From: Hyaloraphidium curvatum SAG 235-1
Lineage: Eukaryota > Fungi > Monoblepharomycota
Length of the DNA: 64,000 nucleotides
Direction: 5' to 3'
Assembly (NCBI GenBank): GCA_025558095.1
Contig: JAIVFI010000031.1
Coordinates: forward strand, 434,001 to 498,000
Notes under the pieces: model-generated
Seen by the model: the letters and a program-made list of their open reading frames with translations, nothing else
Database searches by the model: none
What the model was told of the DNA's origin: nothing
Position numbers and translations under genes: made by a program
Shown here: positions 52,947 through 60,955 of the stretch, one piece after another
How positions within the stretch are numbered: position 1 is the stretch's first letter
How the letters are laid out: the number at the start of each line of letters is the position of its first letter

Positions 52947-53300
52947 TTACTTCTCCTTCTTCGCTTCGCTGGCGGCCTTGGCCTTCTTGGGGTCGGGCTT
53001 GATAATGTCGTAGGTCGAAACCTCAGCGTTCGACGCAAAGTAGTACATGATGCCCGCCAGCACCGTGAAAATGATGAGGATCTCCGGCAGCGGCGACAGT
53101 TTATCCAGGCCGAACCAGTTGAGGCCGATGGTCTCCTCGCCGCGGGCAAGGCGCGAGTTCCAGATGTCGTTTAGTGCGTCCACAATGACCTTGTAGGCGC
53201 TCGCGGCCTCCTCGCCGGACGCCGGCTTCTGGCCCGAGCCGACCTCGGCAATGTACTGCGCGGCCTTTTCGGCCTCTTCGTTGCCAAAAATGCCACTCAT
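52947..53300 (-). CDS. Small single-TM protein (117 aa) with Lys-rich C-terminus
   Basis: MSGIFGNEE...EILIIFTVLAGIMYYF...KKAKAASEAKKEK*; coding-like codon bias. Confidence 0.65.
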   Translation of the reverse strand: MSGIFGNEEAEKAAQYIAEVGSGQKPASGEEAASAYKVIVDALNDIWNSRLARGEETIGLNWFGLDKLSPLPEILIIFTVLAGIMYYFASNAEVSTYDIIKPDPKKAKAASEAKKEK

Positions 53301-53535
53301 TCTGGCGGCGTGCGGGGTTGGAATCGCTTTTTGTCGATTTGCGCGCTGCCGACGGCTGGGCCGGACGATCCGGCCGGGCCGCGTCAACCCATCACCGTCC
53401 GAAATGGACTGAACCGGAGCAATGCAGCTTGTATCCAGGTCTCTTATCCAATAACGACCTAAACAAACACAGCGAGAGCTGGGATTATTTACACCATGCT
53501 CGCTTCTTTCGTCGCCAACCGTCCGTCGTCCCCGC

Positions 53536-56388
53536 CTACTTTTGCCTGAAGTTGCAGAGCCAAAGGGCGAGGTAGGCGACAATCGACCAGCCGAAACCGG
53601 TGATGAAGGCGACGCCCATGTAGAAGCCGGTGGGCGTCGTGATGAAGTGGTCGATGCCGAAGCCGACGACCGAGCCGGAAGAGTTGGTGATGAACCATTG
53701 GAAGGCTGCCGGGTATCGCATCAGCGCAAGTCCAATCGGGCGCTTAAGCACGACTCACCGAGAGCGTTGACGATGTAGGCCTCGCCGTTGGCGTAGAAGC
53801 AAGTCTGCGCGGGCGGCAGGGGGTTGGCGACCAGGAAGTTGGCGAAGCCGAGCATGGCGGCGGCATCGGTGGTCTGCGTGAGCGCAGTGCTGATGGCGGC
53901 CGTGTCGGTGGGGGGGATGTTGATCGCGGCGCCAAAGGCGGCCCGGGCGGCGGCGACCTGCTCGTTCAGGTTGTCGATGACGGCCTGAGGGTTGCCGGCC
54001 GTGGTGGCAGCGGCGCTGGCGATCTGGAGGTTCTGCAACCCGCGCGCGGTGCGGTACAGCGAGTTGACCGTGGCGTTGACGTCGGCACTGGCGTTCTCCC
54101 AGATGTCGAACGAGTTCATCGCAGCCACGAGGCTGGGGTTGGCAGCGACGGCCGTGGCGGTGAGGTTCTTGGCCGCCCCGCTGATGCCGCGGTTCGAGAT
54201 GCCCGTCGTGTCGAAGGGGAACAGCTCAACCGCCGTGCAGGTGAGGTTCTGGCCGTAAAGCTCGTTGCGCATGGTGGGGACGAACCACAGACGGTCGTAC
54301 CTGACGACGACGCAAGGTCAGCTATGCGTCAACGGAATCGCAGGACGATCAAGACACGCACGAGAACCACTGCCAGAAGGCCTTGACCGAGGGGTGGCGG
54401 GTGAACAGGAAGGTGTCGGTGATGTAGTAGCCGCCGAGGAGAATGCCGTAGAAGTAGTGCAGGGTGAAGGTCGCGTTGGCGTACGGGATCGAGGCCGCGA
54501 TGTATGCGCACACAAGGTTGAGACCGGTCGACGCGAAAGCCTCGCAGATCATGTAGGCGATGTAGTAGCCGATGAACTGCGGAAGCCAGCCGGACATCGG
54601 GAACATGATGCCAGCGACGACGGCCTGCAGAGGCGTCAGTAGGTGACGCAGGCAATAGAAAGGGCCGACCCACCATGACGGCCGACAGGAAGACCCATTC
54701 GACGAAGTACATCACGATCAGGTGGCCGAGGCGGTGGTAGTAGCCGGCGGCCTCCTCGTGGTAGTACTGCTTGCGCTTCTCGACCCAGTAAGCGATGGCG
54801 GCGGAACCGTAGCCGGGAACCATGAGCTTGTACGCAAAGCCCTCAGCGCAGCGGGCATCGTAGCCACCTGCGAATCAAAGTCAGATGTGCATCGCTAGTA
54901 CTGCGCAGGAAGACACGCACCAGCGTTGCGGCCGAGCTGCCAGAATGCACCGCCGAAGAAGAGAGCCGTGCAGATACCGGCAATGAAGCGCGAAGTCGAC
55001 ATGATCGGGTTGCGGAGGTAGACCATGACCTGGCGCTTAAGGAGCTGCCAGAACTGGATGTGGACGGGGGCCTGCTGGTAGAAGCCGAGGCGGTCGGCGA
55101 AGGTGGGGACCTCGTCGGCCTTGGCGACGACGTCGTTGATGGAGCCCTGGCCCGAGTGGATGGCCTCGACCTTCTTCTGGAGAATGGTGCGCTCGGCGGA
55201 TCCCTCCCAGGCCTCGATGAGGCGGTCGGGCTGCGCGGCAAGGGCATCGGCGTAGACCTCGGCTGGAAGCGAGGGATAGGTCAGAATGGGTCGAGGCACG
55301 GGCGAACCGAACGGAAAACACACCGGGGTTGCCGGCGACGGGGATTCCGAGCGACTCGAAGTACAAGATGGCGTCGACGACGCGGCCGTAGTAGCAGAGC
55401 TTGCCCTTGGCGAGCGCGAGCAGGTAGTCGAACTGCGACAGGATGGTGTACGACGGCTGGTGGATCGTGGCGATGCAGGCGAGCTTGCGGAGGCGGGTGA
55501 CCTCGACGACGTTGGCGATGATCTCACGGCCGGTGTTGGAGTCGAGGCCGGTCGTGGGCTCGTCGAGGAAGAGCACCGAGGCGACGGGGAGCAGCTCCAT
55601 GGCGACGTTGAGGCGCTTGCGCTCGCCGGTGGACAGGCCGCGCTGGAGAGCGCCGCCGATCCTGCGGTTCTCGCAGTAGCCGAGGCGCATGACCTCAAGC
55701 ACGTCGCTGATCTGCGGGGGCCGAAATCAGGCGCGCTTGAGGTAGTCACGTTCGAGTCGTCCTCACCCGAGAATCACGCTGCTGTTGGCTCCAGTCCTTG
55801 GGCAGGCGGAGAGCGGCGCCGAAGCGCAGCATCTCCTTGCAGGTGAGCTCCGGCGTGAGCAGGTCGTCCGAAGTCACGTAGCCCGACTCCTTGACGAAGG
55901 TGCGCTTGGTGAGGAGGGCGCCGTTGAGCCGGATGTCCTGCGTCCATTTGCCGGTGGTCTTGCGGAAGGCCAGGATGTCGAGAAGGGTCGACTTGCCGGC
56001 ACCCGAGGGGCCCATAATCGCAAGAGTCTCGCCGGGCTGCGGAGGGGGAACAGGGAGACGGTCAGTGCCTTCGCTCGGGGACGTCCCGCAGGCACCGCCG
56101 GCCGGGACGCACCTTGCAGTAGCCCGAAACCATGTCGAGCAGAACCTTGGGCTTGCCCTCCGACTTCAGGACACAGCTGATGTCCTTGAACGAGAAGAAG
56201 GCCGGGTTCAACTGGTTCGGGTCCGTGACGGCCCACGACGCCAGCCTGGCGACCTTCTCGCCGGCCTTGGGCAGGGCGATGGAGGTCTGGCCGGTGGCGA
56301 TCTTCTCCTCGGCAGCCGCGGCGGCGGCGACGCCGGCGTCCATGGCCCCCTGCGTCTCGGCGGCAACGGTCGCGGCGGTGTTCTCCAT
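53536..56388 (-). CDS. ABCG (white-family) half transporter A, NBD-TMD; multi-exon
   Basis: Walker A MGPSGAGKS, signature LSTGERKRL, Walker B LFLDEPTTGLD, TIHQP, YLRNP, six TMs; ends NFRQK*. Confidence 0.93.
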
Positions 56389-57307
56389 TGTTGCGGCTAA
56401 CGGTGTCCCGTCGACGATGGGCTGGAGAGGGCACCTGTTAGTCTGGAGTGCTGCGGCGTCTCCCCCGCGGCGCCGGCGACCGTGTCCCCCGCCACGCGCA
56501 AGCCGCCGCACTCCCCCGGGGGTGCGCCGGCCGCGGGGTCGGCAGGTCGCTACCGAGCGTGTCGCCGGCGCCGCCGCAGCCCAGCGACGCCCACCTCTGC
56601 TCCGCTAACCGGCTGTCGGTCGTTTCGGCCCGGTGGATGAACGGATGAAGCCGGGGACACGGTGATCGAGCGCCTGGACCGCCGTGGCGATCCCCCGCCC
56701 TACCCCCAACCCAATGTTGGGAGACAGGCCGTCACCCACGACAGACAAACGCATTTTATGCACACGCAGCACGTAAAATGCAATAAAAGTCTATTGGAAA
56801 GCCGTACGGGGGAGGATTTTCTCCAGCGGTTGCTCATTGGCGAGCACGAGGTCCGATGCGGCAGTGCGCCGGATGGATCGGAGGCCGGGCAGGGCAACCG
56901 AAGAGCAGATAACGCGCCCCGAGGCATCAGCATTGCATCGCGAGACAAAATTTTGGTCCCCGCCCACTTCTGCTAGCGATACCGATTTTGGCGCTGGCCC
57001 GCCACCTGATGCCCTCGGGGGACCGATTCCGTGGCAATCCGCGCGCCCCAACCGCCTCCGGGCCTTCCCAGCGGCCCAGGACAACTCCGCCAGCTTCAGC
57101 GGGCCTTTTCAAGACCGATCGGCGCCGCAATCGCCTGGTGCGCCTTCCCGCCGATGTATATTGCGGGGGTTCTGTCCCTCGGGGGCTGGTGTCCGGCGTG
57201 GGGCCCTCGGTGGCGGTCGATCTGGACCGACGAATCTCCCGTGCCGCGCCGCGCCGCAGCCCACCGCACGCCCATCGACGCCGTCTCCCCGCACGCCCGC
57301 GACGAGA
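56389..57307. promoter_or_regulatory. Putative shared bidirectional promoter region of the two ABCG half transporters
   Basis: About 920 bp between divergent ATGs with a less GC-rich central patch (~56740-56820); function inferred from position. Confidence 0.4.
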
Positions 57308-60075
57308 ATGGCCTCCGCCGACACCCCCGCCGGGGTCAACGACCACGCCGGCTACACGGTGCGTCGCCGCCCGCCGCCGGGCCCGCGAAGTCCCCCACGC
57401 TGACCCCTTCGCGCAGGTTACCTGGGAGGGCGTCAACTGCAAGCTCACGTCGGGCAACCTGTTCGGTCAGAAGCGCGTGGTGCACTCGCTGATCGACAAC
57501 TCGGGCTTTGCCCGCCCCGGCGAGTCGCTCGCTATCATCGGCCCCTCGGGCGCCGGCAAGACCACGCTGCTCGGTGGGTTTCGCGGGACAGAGCATGGAG
57601 TGGGGGCAGCTATGTGGACGTCTGGAAGTCGCGCAATGCGGCGGAGACGCGGGACTGGGCGGCCAGGCTGTGGGGGATCCCGGGAGACAGGGGGATCAGA
57701 CGGCTCGACTCAACCCGAGTCGACCGCGGGCGTTGCTGGCGTTTCAACGCTGGATGATGAGGCTCCGGCGTGCTTCTCGCTGTGGCGTCGCTGTCGCGGT
57801 TTTTGCTGTTTGCTCACGGCGGTTCCCCATCCGCAGACATCCTCTCGCAGCGCAAGTCCCTCGGCCAGCTCTCCGGCGAGATCCTCGTCAACGGCCAGAA
57901 GCCCGATGCGTTCTTCAAGCGCCGCCTGGGCCAGATTACCACCATGATGGCCCACATCCCGACCATGACCGTGCGCGAGACGCTCATGTTCGCCGCCGAG
58001 TGCCGCATGCCCCGCGCCGCCACCAAGGATGAGCGCATCGCCCGCGTCGACGAGGTCATTGCCGGCCTCAAGCTCACCAACGCCCAGAACACGCCCGTCG
58101 GCGACGAGCTCATCCGCGGTGTCTCCTCCGGCGAGAAGAAGCGCACTGAGGTCGCCACCGAGATGATCGCCCGCCCCCGCATGCTCTTCCTCGACGAGCC
58201 CACTTCGTATGTCCGCTACGTCTGTCTCCTCACGAGCGAAAGCTGATCGAAGTACCGCCTGCAGGGGTCTCGACGACTTCGGCGCGCGCTTCACCATGGA
58301 GCTCGTGCTCAAGTACGTCAAGTCGGAGAACGTCTGCGTCGTTATCGTCATCCACCAGCCCTGCGAGGCCGTCTTCAAGCTCTTCGACAACTGCATGCTG
58401 CTGTCCGAGGGCCGCATCACCTACTTCGGCCCCGTCGCCGCCGCCGAGTCGTACTTCACCACCATGGGCTACCCGACTCCCAAGCTCCAGAACCCCATCG
58501 AGCACTACCTGGACGTCACCTCCGCCAACACGCAGGCCGCCGCCGAGTACTACGACAAGTCGCCCCTCGCGCAGGCCAACCTCGCCGAGATTGCCCGCCT
58601 CAAGAGCCAATCCTACTCCGCCGTGCGCTACTCGGAGCACATCGTCGAGCGCCAGTGGTGGGACCAGATCCGCCTCGTCGGCTACCGCTGTCTCGTCCGC
58701 TACTGGCGCAACCCCTCGACCTCGTGGGGCCGCCTGTTCATGTTCACGGCCCTCGCCTTGGTGTTCGGCGGTCTGTTCTACAACGTGAGTTCCTGTTGCA
58801 GCACCGAATGCCAGCGCTCACATGGCTCTTGCCCATCCAGCTGCAAAACGACGTCCAGGGTATCCGTAACCGTCTTTCCGTCACCTCGACCTTCGGTTTC
58901 CTCGCCATCTTCGTCGCCGTCGCCGCCGTGCCGCAGTTCCTCGAGGACCGCGAGCTGTACCTGCAGGAGCTCGACACCGCCTTCTACGGCACCGTCCCGT
59001 ACTGGCTGACGTACCTCATCATTGAGTGAGTTCAAAGCTGCGACTTTGCCTGTAGGCGAAGTCTGACGCGCGGTCCACCAGGGGTTGCTTCACCATGGTC
59101 ATCACCACGATCCAGATGGTCATCATCTTCTTCATGGCCGGCTTCGAGGCCCAGTACTTCGGCCCCATCTACCCCATGATGCTTGTCCAGATGTGGCTCG
59201 CCACCGCCGTGTCGCAGGCCTGGTCGTCCTGGTGCAAGACCCTCGTGCAGGCCTACACCGCCCTCTGGGCCGCCGGCCTCATCTTCTACGCCTTCTCGGG
59301 CACTCAGGCCGCCCTCGGCACCGTGTCGCCCGCCCTCCGCTGGATGGCCGACATCAACTACTGGCGCTGGTGCCTGCAGTACGTCGTGAGTATGGGCGAG
59401 CGTTTCGTGGCGATCGCGTCTGAGCCTTCTCTTCCCCCCAGATCTGGATCATCATGAAGGACTATATTATGCAGTGCCCCACCATTCCCTCGAGCGTTTT
59501 CGCCGGCCCGGTCGCCGCCGGCTTCCGCAACGCCATGAACGCCACCTTCCTCGCCACGCCCTCGAACGACGTCCAGGTCTCCACGTTCTGGGAGGGCGTC
59601 CGCATCATGAACGCCAACGCCAACGCCGCCGGCTCGTCTGCCAGCACCCCCGCGACGCAGGCCGCCATGCTCGCCAACAACAACGCCATCGCCGCCGGGC
59701 TCGCTCCCCTCACCCAGACCCCCGGCAACTTCTCGGACCCTGCGCAGTACCGCAACGCGATCGGCGCCTTCCAGATGTGGAACAACGCCTCGACCTCGGC
59801 CGTCACCATCGCCCGCTCTCCCGCCATTTTCCCGCCCGGCTACTACTGCCCGGTCGGCCAGGGCAAGGACTTCATCAGGAAGTACCGCGACCTCAGCCCC
59901 GAGAACCCCGCCACCAGTGAGTTTTCTGCCCGAATGCTTTTTCGGGGCCTCGAGGCGCTGACGCATGCACCCCCTAGCCAACGTTGCCTACGCCGTCAAC
60001 GTGTGCCTGTTTATCTTCTTCTCGCTTATGGCCTTGACCGGTCTTATGTTCTCGAGGAACTACCGCAAGCGCTAA
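57308..60075 (+). CDS. ABCG (white-family) half transporter B, NBD-TMD; multi-exon
   Basis: Walker A IGPSGAGKT, TVRETL, signature VSSGEKKRT, LFLDEPTS|GLD, VIHQP, YWRNP, six TMs; ends RNYRKR*. Confidence 0.93.
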
Positions 60076-60316: not shown

Positions 60317-60955
60317 ATGACGCGGCCGGAAGAATATGCGATGATTTCGCTAGCGGAGCCCTCGCCTGCCTCGTTGGACCCGCCTGCGGGGGCAGCACCG
60401 GCTCGCCCGCCGGACTATCCGGATACCGCGCCGGACAGTGCGCCGGAGGAGCTCTTGCTCGCGCCGCTGCCTCAGGAGCCCCCTCCTTATGATCCCGGAC
60501 CGTCGAAACCGGGACGATTATCGCGCGCGTGGGAGTCGGCGAGGGCCGCGCTCCTCAAAGTGCAGCTGAAGGACGTTCTGCCCCCCCTGCTTCTCATCGT
60601 GGCGGCGCTGTTCCTCTTTGCGATCCCAGACCCGAACGCGGCTCCACGAGTGAACGCGGCACCGGCGGCCAACAGCACGCAAAAGGACGTGGATCGGTTG
60701 AAGGCGGCGTGGAAGAACCTTACAGATTCATGGCAGGACCAGGAAACGAAGCAGGTCCAAGCCTGGGCTGAAGGACAAAAGGTCGATCACTTCGGAGACC
60801 CAGATCGAGGCGATAAAGATGAGGAGGAAGTGGTGGACGATCTGGGGAACGGATCCTGGGTCCGCTCGCTGGCAACGACTATTCTCGCATTTGGACTGCT
60901 CTTTGCCTGCTTCGCGGTCTATGGGGTCCTTACGGCGGGAGAAGAGGACAAATGA
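60317..60955 (+). CDS. Two-TM protein with two N-terminal PPxY motifs
   Basis: PPDY and PPPY; TMs LLLIVAALFLFAI and ILAFGLLFACFAVYGVL. Confidence 0.65.
   Translation: MTRPEEYAMISLAEPSPASLDPPAGAAPARPPDYPDTAPDSAPEELLLAPLPQEPPPYDPGPSKPGRLSRAWESARAALLKVQLKDVLPPLLLIVAALFLFAIPDPNAAPRVNAAPAANSTQKDVDRLKAAWKNLTDSWQDQETKQVQAWAEGQKVDHFGDPDRGDKDEEEVVDDLGNGSWVRSLATTILAFGLLFACFAVYGVLTAGEEDK

Follow-up and report, generated by a model that had tools for sequence, protein, structure and literature searches.

The 64,000-nucleotide stretch of DNA of the aquatic fungus Hyaloraphidium curvatum SAG 235-1 analysed here (the window; positions 434,001 to 498,000 of contig JAIVFI010000031.1, assembly GCA_025558095.1) harbors two genes, designated A and B, which encode unlike ABCG half-transporters and stand head to head on opposite strands. 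An earlier note on this DNA had described two full half-transporters, each made of a nucleotide-binding domain (NBD) followed by a transmembrane domain (TMD), transcribed divergently across about 920 bp. Both genes were indeed found intact at these places, and their ATG codons are separated by a short common spacer of 919 bp. The exon models, built by six-frame reading and splice-site inspection (Table 1), gave complete reading frames without stops or frameshifts, in which every catalytic motif is present. All 14 introns of the two genes are bounded by GT and AG (13 of them span 49-76 nt and the remaining one 263 nt), and in gene A, near position 54670, an intron of 49 nt that has a CTGAC branch point gave the appearance of a frameshift.

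Table 1. Features of the locus of genes A and B. Positions are those of the window, position 1 being its first letter; aa, amino acids.
Feature	Position	Strand	Remarks
Gene A, A-type ABCG half-transporter	53536..56388	-	814 aa; 8 exons; ATG at 56388, stop codon 53538-53536
Gene A exons	56388-56113, 56036-55767, 55711-55324, 55262-54921, 54867-54674, 54624-54362, 54300-53759, 53705-53536	-	
A Walker A	55986..56012	-	GPSGAGKST (aa 101-109)
A Q-loop	55863..55883	-	GYVTSDD; Ser at the position of the ABCG2 Q-loop Gln
A signature	55613..55636	-	LSTGERKR (S-T-G-E form; compare ABCG5 ISTGE, PMC7756502)
A Walker B and D-loop	55541..55576	-	VLFLDEPTTGLD
A H-loop	55451-55465	-	IHQPS
A extracellular insert	53784..54239	-	Between two invariant Cys (aa 599-745); N-glycosylation sequons; predicted four-helix bundle
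Divergent intergenic region	56389..57307		Presumed bidirectional promoter; 919 bp, 68% GC
Gene B, B-type ABCG half-transporter	57308..60075	+	719 aa; 8 exons; ATG at 57308, stop codon 60073-60075
Gene B exons	57308-57358, 57417-57573, 57837-58206, 58265-58784, 58841-59025, 59082-59385, 59442-59916, 59978-60075	+	
B Walker A	57540..57566	+	GPSGAGKTT (aa 59-67)
B Q-loop	57929..57949	+	GQITTMM; Thr at the expected Q-loop Gln position
B signature	58121..58144	+	VSSGEKKR
B Walker B and D-loop	58181..58274	+	MLFLDEPTSGLD; interrupted by intron 58207-58264
B H-loop	58350-58364	+	IHQPC
B extracellular insert	59475..59858	+	From Cys 541 to the Cys of YYCPVG (aa 541-665); predicted four-helix bundle

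Using single exons or annotated paralogues as queries of the databases and of the fold and complex models, and local scripts for the joined A and B proteins, we found that the exons of both genes match the Pfam families ABC_tran and then ABC2_membrane_7/ABC2_membrane. This NBD-then-TMD order is that of ABC (ATP-binding cassette) subfamily G, and both proteins have the layout of a half-transporter of this subfamily, i.e., one six-helix ABC-2 type membrane domain preceded by one ATP-binding domain (reverse topology), with a hydrophobic C-terminal helix following a loop insert. A and B share 27% identity over 536 aa, in agreement with the view of the earlier note that they are too dissimilar to be a recent duplication, and the strong C-ending codon bias it had reported was also recovered (63-66% C and 29% G at third codon positions). 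The A protein is 85% identical to the NCBI-annotated paralogue P0152 over 811 aa with two gaps, and the B protein 85% identical to the NCBI-annotated paralogue P0272 over 717 aa with one gap; such near-gapless alignments to full-length annotated proteins support the exon boundaries. As for gene B itself, an exhaustive HMMER search with its exon 4 retrieved a partial H. curvatum protein of 537 aa (KAI9009267.1, P0001), which is 100% identical over the 173 exon residues and equals B residues 1-530. This public annotation lacks the final three exons, i.e., the extracellular insert and the last membrane helix.

The H. curvatum genome was searched with one A exon and one B exon, and tblastn was then run on the 10-kb stretches round each match. 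Both types occur together at 14 loci, all divergent, with 165-1220 bp between the innermost matches; they lie on contigs C31 (two pairs), C33, C10, C5 (two pairs), C9, C36, C35, C16, C40, C12, C32 and C18. No lone A-type gene was found by this search, and the only two lone B-types are both decayed, namely a fragment on C39 (residues 97-399) and a copy on C21 that has an internal TAG stop and has lost the region from transmembrane helix (TM) 2 to TM5, the core of the TMD. There is no A-type gene within 5 kb of these orphan remnants (C39:264501-274500 and C21:456001-466000). When the window pair is compared with the paralogous loci, the DNA similarity skips the spacer and stops within a few bases of both stop codons (53532-60075 in the case of C33). 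The spacer (56389-57307) could not be aligned at the DNA level with the intergenic regions of the paralogous pairs, and the proteins of these pairs stay about 85% identical although their intergenic DNA is unalignable. As regards a promoter motif common to the 12 non-redundant intergenic regions, no 7-9-mer stood clearly above shuffled controls. Maximum-likelihood trees built separately for the A and the B sequences of the 14 pairs (a quick tree in the case of B) displayed the same clades with similar terminal branch lengths, namely {C40,C18}, {C33,C31a,C31b}, {C10,C16,C12,C32} and {C9,C36,C5a=C5b}, with C35 standing alone and C40 and C18 on long branches in both trees. From this match between the A and B trees, we conclude that the pair was duplicated as a unit.

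Several of these copies have features of their own. The second pair of C31 (within 497391-507390), which lies just beyond the end of the window, begins about 5.3 kb past the gene B stop and clusters with the window pair and C33 in both trees, has the inverted order, B on the (-) strand and A on the (+) strand, so that the two B genes of C31 stand tail to tail. The two C5 pairs (571325-581324 and 587669-597668) lie about 13 kb apart in inverted orientation and encode identical proteins, which is due either to an inverted duplication of very recent date or to an artefact of the assembly; near-identical pairs lie on C9 and C36. The most divergent pairs, C40 and C18, have far fewer introns (C40 B aligns over 616 residues in one unbroken frame), so that intron content differs widely between the paralogues.

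Head-to-head A/B pairs also occur outside H. curvatum, where we found six of them in four chytrid species, i.e., two in Gonapodya prolifera (270 and 950 bp apart), two in Synchytrium microbalum (475 and 246 bp apart), and one each in Zopfochytrium polystomum and Chytridiales sp. JEL0842. The type of the neighbor was confirmed by tblastn for four of the six pairs, and in the second Gonapodya and the second Synchytrium pairs the neighbor agreed in length and contig with a B-type protein. Including H. curvatum, the linkage is present in five chytrid species, among which are monoblepharids, a Synchytrium and a member of the Chytridiales. The cross-species protein search reaches only proteins sharing exact 5-residue words, so that distant proteins can escape it; within this reach, A-types were found in chytrid fungi only, and never in a species lacking a B-type. 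A joint tree resolved A and B as separate clades with 100% support each, and the cross-species A and B trees mirrored each other, with the same three deep groups, including in taxa where the genes are now unlinked. Conservation of the linkage in relatives, to which the earlier note had looked, is for the most part upheld: it is kept in the six pairs of the four other species and lost in some Chytridiales, which retain both types. The arrangement is no accident of the window locus, as it is head to head in all 14 H. curvatum copies and in the six pairs elsewhere, with matching trees. We take the window locus to be a copy of a two-gene A/B unit that is old, found across the chytrids and transcribed divergently.

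Both ATP-binding domains keep the catalytic residues, i.e., the Walker A lysine, the Walker B aspartate-glutamate couple (VLFLDEPT in A and MLFLDEPT in B) and the H-loop histidine, and because these are intact, both domains look competent for hydrolysis. Neither A nor B carries the consensus Q-loop glutamine or the VSGGE/LSGGQ signature. The glutamine is replaced in both partners, by a serine that is invariant in the 15 A-types, and by a threonine in the window B and a phenylalanine, valine, tyrosine or alanine in the other B-types, while the signature is S[ST]GE instead of SGGE in both, family-wide. These deviations lie within ABC subfamily G and are no ground for excluding A and B from it.

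The last extracellular loops of the two proteins have common traits. In both types, an insert lies between a conserved cysteine after the re-entrant region and a cysteine before the last helix; it comprises 142-172 aa with 2-6 sequons in the 15 A-types, and 118-144 aa with 1-6 sequons in the 20 B-types. AlphaFold2, run with the family alignment on P0152:590-752, predicted that the A insert folds into a four-helix bundle seated on a small beta base, with a pLDDT (predicted local distance difference test) of 92.7. The same architecture was predicted less robustly for the B insert (P0272:533-675), the best model having a pLDDT of 83.0 and the four others 57-65. Profile-profile comparison did not detect homology between the A and B inserts (hhalign probability of 1.9%), and they have in common only their position, their cysteine anchors and the predicted four-helix architecture. 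For the A insert, Foldseek found no match in the PDB at E <= 0.001, and the ESM Atlas no match with a template-modelling score above 0.41. Nothing comparable to the helical bundle is present in solved ABCG structures, and neither of the two structure libraries searched yielded a clear match to it.

Regarding kinship, A and B matched the solved structures with 216-298 bits for the C-terminal half of Cdr1/Pdr5, 194-224 bits for ABCG2 and 133-156 bits for ABCG5/G8, and their nearest relatives outside the A/B family are full-size ABCGs of dictyostelids and ascomycetes. On these bit scores, and as judged without a tree including G5/G8, ABCG5 and ABCG8 are not the closest relatives of A and B. Since A and B score higher with Pdr5/Cdr1 and ABCG2 than with ABCG5/G8, their head-to-head layout would be convergent, and what likens them to ABCG5/G8 appears, judging from the sequences, to be layout and not descent. 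The ABCG5/G8-like layout put forward by the earlier note is thus retained, any kinship with ABCG5/G8 is unsupported, and so is a sterol role for A and B. We also considered A and B as the N- and C-halves, respectively, of a split full-size pump of the pleiotropic drug resistance (PDR) type, and rejected this possibility, as both prefer the C-half of the 115 full-size ABCGs compared (A in 84/115 and B in 81/115).

It is useful to set these features against those of known transporters. ABCG5 and ABCG8, which form the sterol exporter of animals, are encoded by head-to-head genes with a short common promoter, and their products are obligate heterodimers, in which the ISTGE signature of ABCG5, regarded as degenerate, is paired with the degenerate Walker A of ABCG8 (PMC7756502). 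Like them, A and B are two unlike half-transporter genes placed head to head across a short spacer, and both have glycosylated extracellular loops (predicted sequons in A and B). Unlike them, A and B have no inactive site combining a degenerate Walker A with a degenerate signature, since both partners have the Walker A lysine and S[ST]GE; they lack the Q-loop glutamine, carry a helical-bundle insert of 120-170 aa in the last extracellular loop and belong to a unit amplified to 14 copies. With ABCG2 (BCRP), A and B share the half-size, the consensus Walker A, Walker B and H-loop, a conserved cysteine in the last extracellular loop (PMC7756502), and the TM1/TM2-TM5 dimer interface, which in A/B is seen in a model. 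In contrast to A and B, ABCG2 is a single-gene homodimer with a Q-loop glutamine, a VSGGE signature and a short loop devoid of a helical bundle. The PDR pumps (Pdr5, Cdr1) are the best solved-structure match of both A and B, through their C-terminal half, and they resemble them in their large extracellular loops after TM5 and in a similar gene family expansion. A PDR pump, however, is a single (NBD-TMD)2 chain that carries a PDR_CDR loop domain and whose first ATP site is strongly degenerate, whereas A and B are encoded by two genes and do not correspond to N- and C-halves. No Pfam match to PDR_CDR (PF06422) was found on the A and B loop exons, and the true PDR_CDR matches in the H. curvatum genome, at four places, lie elsewhere than the A/B pair. 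In Drosophila, white, scarlet and brown are ABCG half-transporters that act as defined heterodimers, and A and B, as half-transporters that would likewise pair, are similar to them. To our knowledge, the white, scarlet and brown partner genes are not head-to-head neighbors. The WBC group is named in PMC2848647.

From the above lines of evidence, we propose that A and B are the cognate partners of a heterodimeric exporter. We regard this as the best reading of the data, with a probability of about 0.7, because of the strict 1:1 co-duplication of A and B, the decay of the orphan copies, the head-to-head linkage in five species, the mirrored trees, and the retention of both types together where they are unlinked. 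That A and B co-duplicate and keep their linkage is what a cognate heterodimer predicts. In the proposed mechanism, the A and B products would be made together from the shared intergenic region, and would assemble via the usual ABCG TM1/TM2-TM5 interface to form one ATP-driven exporter; each partner would provide one ATP-binding domain and one glycosylated four-helix bundle, and the two bundles might jointly cap the extracellular exit. In this scheme, we infer the co-expression of A and B, the formation of the heterodimer, its membrane location and the direction of export. Of the heterodimeric lipid/sterol transporter envisaged by the earlier note, the heterodimer fits the co-duplication and the conservation of the pair, and the lipid/sterol part finds no support. 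The likeness of A and B to PDR pumps and ABCG2 is suggestive of a range of lipophilic or xenobiotic substrates rather than a single housekeeping sterol, and so is the expansion of the unit to 14 pairs.

To model the physical association of the two types, we took the membrane halves of the most closely related paralogous pair (P0152:368-812 and P0272:315-718). The model reached an ipSAE (interaction prediction score from aligned errors) of 0.69, versus 0.00 for the best of three controls, a result that does not separate A/B from A/A or B/B. In the calibration of this score, 51 of 78 solved complexes attained this value, as did 2 of 108 mismatched pairs. Agreement between the runs extends to at least 49% of the contacts, with a partner pLDDT of at least 62, and the modelled interface places TM1/TM2 against TM5, with a contribution of the loop bases.

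A number of observations weigh against the proposed heterodimer. The result of the complex model may stem from a memory of solved ABCG dimers, and the model is blind to the difference between hetero- and homodimers. The ATP sites show no complementary asymmetry of the ABCG5/G8 or PDR kind; A and B deviate alike, and the motifs thus force no heterodimer. Co-duplication of neighboring genes can also arise by segmental duplication alone. Furthermore, the linkage is lost in Irineochytrium and Dinochytrium, where A and B are not adjacent and both types are kept, and it appears lost in Blyttiomyces and Phlyctochytrium bullatum, where A and B lie on contigs of different length. No A adjoins the B-like genes of Chytridium lagenaria and Blyttiomyces, and no A-type was detected along with the B-like genes of C. 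lagenaria, Phlyctochytrium planicorne and the holozoan Corallochytrium by the 5-residue-word search, which could have missed an A.

Several of these points would be expected if A and B were two independent homodimeric pumps (A/A and B/B) that adjoin only for shared regulation, with a common promoter switching both on. ABCG2 and ABCG1 function as homodimers (PMC7756502), both A and B have an ATP-binding domain with the full catalytic residues and no complementary degeneracy that would force them together, B-like genes stand alone at the C. lagenaria, Irineochytrium and Blyttiomyces loci, and Corallochytrium has a B-like gene for which the word-limited search found no A-type. Yet the 13 duplications in H. 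curvatum never split the two types, leaving no lone A and only decayed lone B copies, a B-type is present in each species where an A-type was found, and the A and B trees match even when the genes are unlinked, so that we consider independent homodimers to be unlikely. It is also conceivable that A- and B-types heterodimerize beyond their neighbor, in which case 14 A and 14 B proteins could mix into many pumps. The alignments show that the interface helices are conserved among the A and among the B paralogues, the complex-model test is, by its own calibration, also passed by near relatives of a true partner, and Synchytrium has more B-type than A-type clusters. Such combinatorial pairing nevertheless strikes us as rather improbable, for the strict 1:1 co-duplication and the kept head-to-head linkage are most simply explained by cognate partners that are made together.

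The two other explanations concern the origin and the integrity of the window pair. A fungal orthologue of animal ABCG5/ABCG8, with a layout inherited from the common opisthokont ancestor, would account for the identical gene arrangement (PMC7756502), for the S-T-G-E signature that A has in common with ABCG5, and for the presence of a B-like gene in the holozoan Corallochytrium. This orthology was rejected on similarity scores and motifs, and we view it as very improbable: the scores of 133-156 bits against ABCG5/G8 compare with 194-298 bits for ABCG2 and Cdr1/Pdr5, the degenerate Walker A of ABCG8 is seen in neither partner and S[ST]GE in both, and the nearest relatives outside the family are the full-size dictyostelid and fungal ABCGs. 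As to the possibility that the window pair is a decaying, non-functional duplicate, the partial NCBI annotation of B could be taken in its favor, and the two B-type remnants elsewhere prove that copies do decay. The complete frames, the 14 canonical introns, the lack of stops and frameshifts, the full set of catalytic motifs, and the 85% protein identity with the nearest paralogues, in spite of unalignable non-coding DNA between the genes, make it hardly credible.

Should A and B be cognate partners, as we propose, the design of the human sitosterolemia locus, in which two half-pumps are served by one promoter, would have arisen independently a second time. The 14 copies in one genome would offer a set of matched partners on which the mutual recognition of ABCG halves could be studied, and the family-wide loss of the Q-loop glutamine in otherwise competent-looking domains bears on how ABCG pumps couple ATP hydrolysis to transport. 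A literature search found no description of chytrid ABCG pairs or of the A/B genes, and Kovalchuk and Driessen (2010) listed only Adp1- and YOL075C-like ABC-G proteins in Batrachochytrium. More speculatively, A/B might represent an ancient class of ABCG heterodimers, so far undescribed and dating back at least to the monoblepharid/chytrid split, in which the G5/G8 layout would have evolved independently, both ATP domains would work without a Q-loop glutamine, a cap made of two unlike bundles would take in the substrate or pass it on, and the pump may have in chytrids the role of the full-size PDR pumps of higher fungi; we advance this larger picture as a tentative and rather doubtful possibility.

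Finally, some features of the gene neighborhoods can be mentioned. In the window, open reading frames with hydrophobic stretches occur just beyond both stop codons (60317-60955 on the (+) strand and 52947-53582 on the (-) strand); they fall outside the duplicated unit, because the likeness to the paralogous loci ends at the stop codons. In Synchytrium microbalum (QEAO01000003.1), the genes on either side of one A/B pair encode a glycolipid-transfer protein and two cytochromes P450, which may hint at a lipid or xenobiotic context, and a further B-type gene (g00987) is located a few genes on, as judged by its locus-tag number. In Dinochytrium kinnereticum, where the linkage to B is lost, the A-type gene lies directly downstream of an aspartokinase gene. 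In Phlyctochytrium bullatum, an aspartokinase and an A-type protein are annotated as one fusion protein of 997 aa (P0188), which is probably a merged gene model.

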